From Botryllus schlosseri (lineage: Eukaryota): a stretch of 64,000 bases of DNA. Positions 17,001 through 20,000 of the stretch are shown in pieces. The stretch covers positions 11,346,001-11,410,000 of the forward strand of contig CM119372.1 in NCBI GenBank assembly GCA_051294905.1, in the 5' to 3' direction. Within the stretch, counting starts at the first letter, position 1, and each line of letters opens with the position of its first letter. The notes under the pieces were generated by a model, which worked only from the letters and a program-made list of their open reading frames with translations, was not told the DNA's origin and searched no databases. A program made the position numbers and the translations under genes.

Positions 17001-20000
17001 CTTGTCAGCTGTCCAAACTGCTTACCATGGACCCGTTGAAGAGGATCACGTCCGACGCTGCTTTGTCGGACCCGTATTTCAGCGAGGACCCTCTTCCAAG
17101 CAAGGAGTAAGTGCGTGAGGTTTTTCGGTTTTGTTTGGAATCTGTGATTTCTTTATATGTACGATACAATGTGCAGCATGCTTGTTTCACAAATGAACAT
17201 TTGATTCTGTGTACGTATCTGTTTTCATGTAATATGATTGAGATCTAGTCCTCGTAATGAAATAATATTTTGAGGATAAGCCCGCTCAGTGTTCAAGGAT
17301 CAGTGGTCTTCTTTTTGCCAAATAGCAACAAGTCAATATTGTCGGGACAATTTCCAGGGTGTTTTTAAATAGTATATTCATATTGAAATGAACCCGAATA
17401 TTTTCGGCTGACACTCGTCAGGGTGTTTTTATGCAACAGTCGGGTTTGATTACGAGCAATGAGTCAAAAAGTGGGACTGTCTTACAAAGTAGGGCTTCTA
17501 TTCTTTGGGCTTGTGCTACTTTCTTTCGTACGCTTCACAGTTCTACCATGGCATTGCTGTGTGATACAGTGTTGGGATCAAGTCACTACCTTCGAGTCAC
17601 GAGTCATCTCGAGTCATTGCACATTTTGACTCGAGTCAAGTCAAGTCAATCGATTTTTGAAGGTGACTCGAGTCAAGTCAAGTCACTCGTTTTATGGATG
17701 TGACTCGAGTCAAGTCAAGTCGAGTCGAGTCACGAGTCAAGTCACAATTCAAGTCAAATTGAATTTTCGAAGTATCAGTGACGATCCAAAGTCATTAGAT
17801 TTTGCTAGCTGTGTGAAAGACAGAATAATTTGCCATTTATCTTACATCAAATAACTAAAAGAAAGTTCAATATGCATGCAAGAAGGCGTCTATCACGCAC
17901 ACGTAGAACCGCAAATAAAATACGCGACTAACTATATAGCTATGCTATAGTCTCTTGTTATATCAGCCAATAGGATCGAATAGATAGAAGCCTCGAGAAG
18001 TTGTAACAAATTGATATGGATTTGAATCATACAAGAGGGTTGGTAAAGGTGATCACTGTGCAATGTTAGCACTTAGCCGTCTAAGAAACATAGGTACGTT
18101 AATTGCTATTGTTTTCTTCTTCTACTACTACTACTACTACTACTGCAACTACTACTACTACTACTACTACTACGACAACGTAACCTGTGAATATTTCGTT
18201 AGTGGTCAATATATTTGTGATGCAATAATGGAGCATCATTCAAACGTACATTCAGTGAATGCCTGGTTACTCTCACGAGTGACGCAGGCGTATCGCGAAC
18301 AATACGAACATACACAAAATACAGTGATTTGATTGATACCGTTTACTTGATGACTTGAAATTGACTCGTAAATTTTGCTTCGAGTCACGAGTCAATCCGC
18401 ATTTTTGAAGCGCCGAGTCAAGTCAAGTCAAGTCATTTTTGCAAAGTGACTCGAGTCAAGTCAAGTCATACGAAAAAGTTGACTCGAGTCTGACTCGAGT
18501 CAAGTCATGACTCGAGTCATCCCAACACTGGTGTGATATAAAGTGCCAACGTCAAATATTATCTCGGTGGTCTGCAGCCCAGAGTTCAGCGACGGAAGAA
18601 GCTTGGGAAACGGCCAAGCCGTTCATGTTATATTGTGACTTGGGTTACTGATCCACCTGACTTGCGGGAGTATCTCTAAATCAGTATTTCTTACCCTTTT
18701 TCTAGCACGAACCCCTAAATTTCTATGGGTGAATATGTGATTAGGGAAGACGATGACTAAAAAAGGTCATCAATAGGGCAAGTTTTCGTAACTTTTTTTT
18801 ACAGCTTCCGGCAGCTTCCTAAATACTCGTAAGATATGTAGAATTCTGTTTTAAACCCGTTGAAGGAATCTTATAGTGCAAATTTTTGCAACTTTTGTCC
18901 ATTTTTTTCATGCAACTTTTTCTATTTTTCGTGAAAGTATTTTCGATTTTGGTGAAATACACGGCCAAATTTGACTGAAACAACGTAAATCAGCACTGAA
19001 ATGACGCTTTTACGGGTGTTTCGGGAACTGAGCCGGAAAATTGCCTTTTTTTTAGTCAACCGGGCAAAATGTGGTCAAAATGCAACTTCTGCAACTTTTG
19101 TTAAAATTTAAAAAATGAATGCAACTTTCTCAGGTTTTTAGTGCAACAACAACTTGCCCTAGTCATCACTTATCACAGGGATATATAGAAGTTCTGTATA
19201 TCCCTGACTTATCACAGTGCCCTTCAACCTTTTTTGGAATGTTACACCCTTTTTTCTATTTACGTGGAAGTGGTCCACCGTGGTGCACGACTAATGTCCA
19301 TGAGTAGCCTGTGCTTGAAGGTAATTACCGTACTAAAATAACATCGTAATATTTTCTAGTATTGTGACGACTAAAAAAAGTAATATACCAACAGTGTTGA
19401 TCCAACACTCTTGCTCAGTTCTGATATTTCGCCTGCACTATCACTGCAATGACTAAACCAGGCCATCATCAGATGCCAGTTGCATTATGTAATGGTTGTG
19501 GCATCTGGTACACCCAATAGCAGTGGCATACCCTTGAAAAGGTAATTCTGGTACACCCTTACGTGTACGATACACCTGGTTGAAGAGCGATGACTTATCA
19601 TATCACATATCAGGTCTAGTTGTTGCCTAAAATGCTACTTGATGACTAAAAATGTGTCTTTCGAATGTGACCTGTGGTGCCGAAAATAAGAGGAAGCATT
19701 GGCCGTTCATAGACCCCTTAAGTCTAGTCTGTGAACCCCGTGTTACGAACCCCTTCTCTAGCCCGATTACGGAGCTGGTCGCTTTAATGCAGTGTATTCG
19801 GAAGCAACCCGATCCTGTACCCGCGTCGGGAATTCATTAACGACGAAGAGAACGAAGATAAAGCGGACAAGAACCAAATCAAGGTAGACGGCGTCTCGCA
19901 CGAGAATATCCATGATGATTCTCCAATAAATTAGAACCGAGAAAATATCTTGACGACTGATAATTTGTCACAGCCGGCGTCGAAGAGGATGAAGTTCAGC

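Follow-up and report, generated by a model that had tools for sequence, protein, structure and literature searches.

The P transposase of Drosophila cuts the 3' strand at the border of the element and the 5' strand 17 nt inside it (PMC7776569), and the donor ends carry 17-nt non-complementary 3' tails (PMC2895639). Repair of these donor ends is known to yield blunt joins, microhomologies of 1–3 nt, insertions of 1–3 bp, longer microhomologies and templated insertions (PMC2895639). In the corresponding footprints, the 8-bp duplication is kept on both sides, with about 15–17 nt of each inverted end lying between (PMC7776569, PMC2895639). The chemistry of hAT elements is of another kind. In hAT excision, hairpins form on the flanking DNA (PMC5499845), which means that such an event should leave no element ends behind.

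The 64,000-nucleotide stretch of Botryllus schlosseri DNA analysed here, called the window hereafter, contains two copies of a 31-bp palindrome that can be compared with both systems. The resemblance to P footprints lies in the duplication preserved on each side, in the length of inverted end found between, and in junctions that are blunt, share 1–3 nt or carry short or templated insertions. The ends differ in starting with CAGGG, as against CATG in P, and the host is an ascidian. Moreover, the Drosophila footprints were obtained from crosses, whereas natural copies from several samples are considered here, and their assignment to the P type, with its THAP/P-type transposase, is a putative one. 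With hAT MITEs, the palindrome has in common CAGGG ends, an 8-bp duplication, many copies and no coding capacity. It differs from them as a 31-bp unit devoid of internal or subterminal sequence, the centre of which varies like a repair junction.

Two further kinds of small element are relevant to this comparison. The 80-bp MiHsmar1 of primates also consists of little beyond two inverted ends and has reached a high copy number, but it keeps tens of base pairs between two 30-bp ends and is uniform in sequence, in contrast to the 0–4 nt and the variable junction observed here. The Ds-type derivatives of abortive gap repair come from a longer element, as is proposed below for the palindrome, and stay at its site with the duplication. 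Their end points are scattered and usually hundreds of base pairs are kept, whereas each side retains at most 17 nt in the present case. The reading that we consider probable is that each 31-bp palindrome is the excision scar of a longer cut-and-paste transposon with P-like cleavage.

Two Palindromes between Target-Site Duplications

Copy 1 occupies positions 19176–19206 and consists of two element ends (15 + G + 15). It is flanked by identical 8-bp target-site duplications, ACTTATCA, at 19168–19175 and 19207–19214. Copy 2, a perfect 31-bp palindrome of the same design (15 + G + 15) at 54887–54917, lies between the duplications TTTTCACC at 54879–54886 and 54918–54925; no strand is assigned to the palindromes or to their duplications. 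The first-pass annotation had described a 31-bp palindrome between perfect 8-bp repeats and a second copy of equal length at 54887 with another repeat, and the sequence bears out both statements. Its description of the unit as consisting solely of two transposon ends, joined back to back between target-site duplications, also agrees with the anatomy. The 8-bp duplication is intact on both sides of each copy, as in the P superfamily (8 bp for the typical case, 7–9 bp across the superfamily). As single-stranded DNA, each copy folds into a 14-bp stem, with energies of −9.4 kcal/mol for copy 1 and −12.5 kcal/mol for copy 2 (z about −7).

Such an arrangement is rare in the window. A perfect flanking repeat of 7–9 bp accompanies only 2 of its 79 short palindromes (arm of at least 10, spacer of at most 6), and these two are copies 1 and 2. 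A looser scan of the window, with 9-nt arms, 8-bp repeats, one mismatch allowed in each and a length of 16–150, returned both copies together with four low-quality matches. Block shuffles gave 0–2, on which ground chance palindromes are rejected. In a third scan, restricted to palindromes starting with CA or TA, good flanking repeats were again found in the window at copies 1 and 2 only.

Read on the minus strand, copy 2 opens with the complete 17-nt end CAGGGATATCTAGAACT, and the remaining 14 nt belong to the other end, that is 17+15 with one shared nucleotide; this form is the commonest one in other samples. When copy 2 is taken as the reference, copy 1 shows C>A at position 10, G>T at the paired base (position 22) and A>G at position 21, and its arms contain a single mismatch (left position 11, T versus C). 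Three differences next to a perfect duplication fit inheritance from the source element rather than later decay. The two-sided change at positions 10/22 has a chance probability of about 0.03. It is most probably explained by a source element in which the left and the right end had the same variant; also conceivable are fold-back synthesis that derives the two arms from a single end, and selection acting on the hairpin.

Genomic Surroundings

Copy 1 sits in an intron of CDK8, a gene on the + strand whose exons are read at about 14001–17107 and 19788–21386, and copy 2 lies about 930 bp downstream of an ORF ending at 53954. No transposase was identified among the long ORFs of the window, which correspond to importin-7, a BING4/WDR46-like protein and a CDK8 exon, the other frames being unassigned. 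The importin-7 of the window is encoded by a single ORF, and is 71% identical to its best named match, from Styela clava, and 61% identical to the Ciona protein, which assigns the window to a stolidobranch ascidian. When the importin-7 product was used to locate this region in other assemblies, an exact look-up returned no record, and a homology search returned no same-species protein.

At least 12 elements of 338–2832 bp, with 8-bp duplications and CAG/TAG inverted ends, were identified in the window, against 0–2 in shuffles. Three palindrome scans detected no short form of the families of these hAT-like elements in the window. The idea that short forms are a general property of the hAT-like elements of the window is rejected, since no other family has one, and the short-form behaviour points to a feature specific to the family of the 31-bp palindrome. 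Because the abundant hAT-like families of the window left no short forms, the underlying chemistry would also be specific to the family of the palindrome.

No long element with CAGGGATAT ends was found in the window. A lone family-like end, CAGGGATATTTAGATACT, is present at 11095–11112 on the + strand, with one mismatch in 14 specified bases. By our own calculation, about 0.02 matches of this kind are expected in the window, and neither an inverted partner nor a flanking repeat was found for it. It may have been left by a longer member, or the match may be due to chance.

Further Copies in Other Samples

Positions 54300–55500 served as the reference for aligning raw Hi-C reads from X34, as well as contigs from three further runs (X32, X5 and X9). 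In X34, the depth was about 28 on the palindrome of copy 2 versus 0 on the unique flanks. All 43 of the 43 raw reads match the palindrome alone, 15 of them being at least 99% alike. The unmatched read parts begin at 54884–54887 and at 54917–54918, thus at most 3 bases from the borders of the palindrome, and a larger repeat enclosing it is rejected for this reason. Their agreement with the consensus is about 0.5, which implies many different flanks. The same imbalance is seen in the contigs, with depths on the palindrome and on the flank of 3840 versus 2.3 in X32 (about 1700-fold), 26417 versus 82 in X5 (about 320-fold) and 42 versus 2.4 in X9 (17-fold).

These data show that the palindrome belongs to a multi-copy family, whose CAGGG...CCCTG borders are exact and whose flanks are of many kinds, in line with the earlier expectation of more than two copies. 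Some of the features by which MITEs are recognised are found here, namely inverted ends with a duplication and numerous copies scattered over unrelated sites. The copy number lies somewhere between tens and thousands, a range which cannot be narrowed by scaling the X34 depth, as coverage in this sample is very low both on the flanks and on the high-copy repeat nearby, and the reads, whatever their label, may derive from another species. Neither a filled nor an empty allele was seen among the aligned reads and contigs, the latter breaking at the palindrome. In X32 and X5, the right-flank contigs match from 54889 and are preceded by 147–148 nt of other sequence, which represent either an assembly-graph mis-join or a second allele.

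A Variable Centre

The reads were aligned to the 31-bp form, a survey in which forms with long inserts or border indels would be missed and which is biased towards about 31 bp; within it, copies of 28, 30, 31, 34 and 35 bp were observed among the aligned reads and contigs. Their differences are located at the centre only, and all indels fall within unit positions 10–16. About two thirds of the raw reads (27 of 40) represent the 31-bp form, without any centre indel, and central insertions of ACT and of CTTT are found in 6 and 5 of the 40, respectively. A central deletion of 3 nt is seen in several contigs of each run, up to 10–13 per run, and classes with a 1-nt deletion or with an inserted TAGA are also present. 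At least five centre-length classes can be distinguished, each of them at several loci.

All these classes can be rebuilt from two joined ends. The 34-bp class is a perfect palindrome of 17+17, the 31-bp class is 17+15 with 1 nt shared, the 30-bp class is either 17+14 with 1 nt shared or 15+15, and the 28-bp class is 17+13 with 2 nt shared. The 35-bp class exists in two forms, the first being 17 + TT + 16, and the second 17, a 4-nt copy of neighbouring bases, and 14. One end measures exactly 17 nt in 7 of the 8 rebuilt classes and exceeds 17 nt in none of the 8, a cap whose reliability is limited to that of the five length classes observed. If the end were to read ...AACTAG, the 34-bp class might alternatively consist of 19+19 with an overlap at CTAG.

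The junctions themselves are blunt, share a microhomology of 1–2 nt or contain a short filler, as in end joining (cf. PMC2895639). The 34- and 35-bp classes independently give C and T at end positions 16–17, which the 31-bp form cannot do, and the same 17 nt, these two positions included, open the ends of a related family found in metagenome contigs. Since bases 16–17 are present and match the related family, the copies appear to hold information from an end of more than 15 nt, and hence from a longer element.

A Related Family in Metagenome Contigs

A scan of metagenome contigs gave mostly chance matches, together with this related family, which is present in contigs of a few host-associated JGI projects. 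In its ends, the shared opening 17 nt are followed by CC. The contigs share repeats among themselves, not with the window, and the ORFs near the related ends encode a Penelope-like RT and GIY-YIG only. The shared repeats and the Penelope-like ORF indicate that these contigs come from one eukaryote. It is in this metagenome host only that longer members of palindrome-like families were found, one of 374 bp (L117) and one of 1150 bp with a 7-bp duplication (L113). Both are non-coding, and no transposase was found near these long members. The whole short form had no match in genome_contigs or viral_contigs. Literature searches returned nothing relevant on the end sequence and nothing comparable on very short MITEs.

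The short forms of the related family span 20–59 bp. Those of 31, 32 (three loci), 41, 48, 54 and 59 bp lie between duplications of 7–8 bp, and most of the duplications of the family are 8 bp long, two being 7 bp. A one-sided form of 20 nt is also observed (L051). The longer short forms (L099, L062, L011 and L001) are built of 17–20 nt, a filler copying part of the end, and another 17–20 nt. Such self-copying fillers are the templated-insertion signature of the end-joining repair pathway described for P, and they support the derivation of these short forms from long elements by excision and repair. The asymmetric 32-bp form (20+12) stands at three loci with different duplications (L048, L107 and L055), and the copying of a unit explains this more easily than repeated repair does.

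Probable Excision Scars with P-Like Cleavage

The shape of the palindrome suggests an enzyme that cuts 17 bases inside each end, as is the case for the Drosophila P element. The anatomy of the centre classes is that of the P-excision repair spectrum, which is predicted neither by hAT excision nor by a mobile unit that is faithfully copied. From these features we infer that a long element was once present, where it was cut, and that it belonged to a P-like superfamily and not to hAT.

In the proposed course of events, a longer transposon with CAGGGATATCTAGAACT ends would have inserted at the site and thereby generated the 8-bp duplication. Its transposase would later have excised it in a P-element-like manner, cutting one strand at the element border and the other about 17 nt inside, and each flank would have kept a 17-nt single-stranded tail of element sequence. 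Two tails of the same sequence cannot pair, and the cell would have united them by end joining, after trimming them slightly if at all. The expected products, between intact duplications, would be of 34 bp (17+17, blunt), 31 bp (17+15, one base shared), 30, 28 and 35 bp.

If the staggered cut is fixed at 17 nt and the tails are then end-joined, the same lengths would arise repeatedly at independent sites, so that equal length at two sites needs no mobilisation. The first-pass annotation had drawn the opposite conclusion from the equal 31-bp length, namely that the unit is a complete, self-mobilised transposon, and had itself regarded varying copy lengths as evidence against this view. Five centre-length classes are observed, from 28 to 35 bp, and can be parsed by end joining with at most 17 nt per end; the self-mobilised transposon is consequently no longer the best reading, and an excision scar is preferred. 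The hAT signature, also proposed at that stage, stands as far as the CAGGG ends and the 8-bp duplications are concerned. It does not stand as a diagnosis, because the P superfamily shares both features and hAT excision should leave no ends.

A CAGGG start belongs to the YARNG type which, like the 8-bp duplication, is common to hAT and P-superfamily ends and does not discriminate between them. The remains of the excision are more informative in this respect. A hAT scar would be recognised by altered flank bases and not by element ends, whereas 15–17 nt of each end are present here and the duplications are intact.

Some observations speak against excision scars, or against P over hAT. The 31-bp form accounts for about two thirds of the raw reads, and yet the microhomology at its junction is only 1 nt. 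The paired change of copy 1 (10/22) presupposes a source element in which both ends had the variant. The CAGGG start and the 8-bp duplication fit hAT equally well. Searches of the window found no parent element or transposase with the ends of the palindrome in its species.

Alternative Explanations

It appears unlikely that the 31-bp unit, in which two minimal ends are separated by 1 nt, moves as such through excision and re-insertion by a transposase that another element supplies; it would then be the smallest known mobile DNA. The many copies with different flanks, exact borders and one dominant length (27/40 raw reads) would be accounted for in this way, as would the perfect 8-bp duplications at both window copies and the recurrence of one asymmetric 32-bp form at L048, L107 and L055 with different duplications. 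The pairing of copy 1, kept by a two-sided change, also looks as if the hairpin or cruciform mattered. However, the centre-length classes, at least five in number and found at several loci each, all parse as joined tails of at most 17 nt. The exact 17+17 form has extra bases that are those of the longer end of the related family, a pattern which random indels would not give, and the one-sided and filler-containing forms of that family argue in the same direction. From a mechanical point of view, DNA is stiff, and ends 31 bp apart cannot loop into one synaptic complex. P and hAT elements, moreover, both need subterminal binding sites.

We also give little credit to a scenario in which a true hAT element makes flush cuts at its borders, the refilling of the gap from the sister copy aborts, and the strands anneal at CTAG, TCTAGA or GATATC, producing extreme internal deletions in situ. 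Such a course would suit the CAGGG ends, the 8-bp duplications and a window full of hAT-like elements, as well as an end rich in self-complementary motifs. For P excision, repair by partial synthesis together with end joining has been documented (PMC2895639), and some forms of the metagenome host keep at least 19–20 nt and carry fillers. Annealing at these motifs nevertheless predicts products of 22 or 14 bp, whereas the dominant form measures 31 bp and its junction shares 1 nt. Scattered retained lengths would also be expected, instead of the stop at 17 nt seen in 7 of the 8 classes, and the abundant hAT-like families of the window left no such forms.

A related proposal, which we regard as doubtful, is that the scars are still mobile. 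As they keep both cleavage sites and ends of 15–17 nt, the transposase might cut and insert them again, perhaps on an extruded cruciform that joins the borders. A palindrome of 31 bp would in that case constitute a complete mobile DNA, far smaller than any other known, and the dominance of one form and the continued pairing of the arms would be explained.

Very improbable, finally, is a variant of the scar reading in which both arms come from a single end, its tail folding back, being extended by a repair polymerase as far as the double-stranded flank, and finally being ligated to the flank opposite: the arms would be symmetrical automatically, as the paired change of copy 1 at 10/22 (chance about 0.03) might indicate, templated insertions copying nearby sequence are typical of the repair pathway (PMC2895639) and the fillers of the metagenome host copy pieces of the end, but the 31-bp form needs a sterically poor loop of 1–3 nt and the arms of copy 1 are not fully symmetrical (position 11 versus 21).

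Implications

The interpretation of the palindromes as P-type excision scars has consequences for annotation, in the form of a warning that a tiny palindrome flanked by duplications is not necessarily a mobile element. If this interpretation is true, the ascidian genome would hold a readable record of past excisions, in which each scar marks the former site of an element. Taken jointly, the scars would report where the transposase cuts, 17 nt inside the end. To our knowledge, the Drosophila P element is so far the only one for which biochemical measurements of a 17-nt stagger exist, and the long-stagger cut would thus extend to a deuterostome family with hAT-like ends. Excisions would become countable against insertions over evolutionary time, and the scars would provide a natural sample of end-joining outcomes in the germ line of a chordate.

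Transposon-like elements and genes in the window

At least 12 hAT-like elements combining CAG/TAG inverted ends with 8-bp target duplications were detected in the window, versus 0–2 such pairs in shuffled sequences. They lie at positions 11190–11687, 11730–12072, 12720–13226, 17567–18530, 23150–23487, 29399–31609, 29864–31479, 37680–39030, 42521–43446, 44812–47643, 52501–52999 and 55623–56549. Some of them are nested, and two families, with the ends CAGTGTTGGGAT and CAGTGGTTCCCA, are each present twice. A single end similar to those of the 31-bp palindrome family (one mismatch over 14 specified bases) is found at 11095–11112, adjoining three nested hAT-like elements; no partner or flanking repeat was found for it in the window. 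A 21-bp near-palindrome, TTAAACAAGGGCCTTGTTTTA, was also observed at 41568–41588 between the flanks AACATGTT and AACCTGTT. It may be due to chance, or be an excision scar of another family.

Two genes of the window, importin-7 (1049 aa, 7397–10546, forward strand) and a BING4/WDR46-like protein (613-aa ORF, 4714–6555, reverse strand), each consist of a single uninterrupted ORF, whereas the adjoining CDK8 gene contains introns.

Surroundings of the second palindrome copy

The segment 54300–54693 is a repeat of very high copy number. In three runs from other samples, contigs cover it thousands of times more deeply than the adjacent single-copy DNA, and numerous internal deletion joints are seen. 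As for the palindrome itself (54887–54917), the contig spanning its left flank ends at its third base, 54889. In two contigs from other samples (X32 record 8 and X5 record 16), the match to the window begins at this base and extends rightwards, preceded by 147–148 nt of non-window sequence. This break reflects either a second allele or an assembly-graph artefact.

A related family in a metagenome host

JGI metagenome contigs of a eukaryotic host, which also encode a Penelope-like element (a reverse-transcriptase domain and a GIY-YIG domain in one ORF of 406 aa, L095:12374–13591, reverse strand), carry a transposon family whose ends open with the 17 nt of the palindrome family. It comprises long members (L113:8228–9377 and L117:1902–2275) together with short forms of 20–59 bp, such as L051:11869–11888, L118:7116–7146, L099:3839–3879, L062:7031–7078, L011:9065–9118 and L001:906–964. 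Three further loci (L048:6292–6323, L107:11089–11120 and L055:2933–2964) carry the same 32-bp form.
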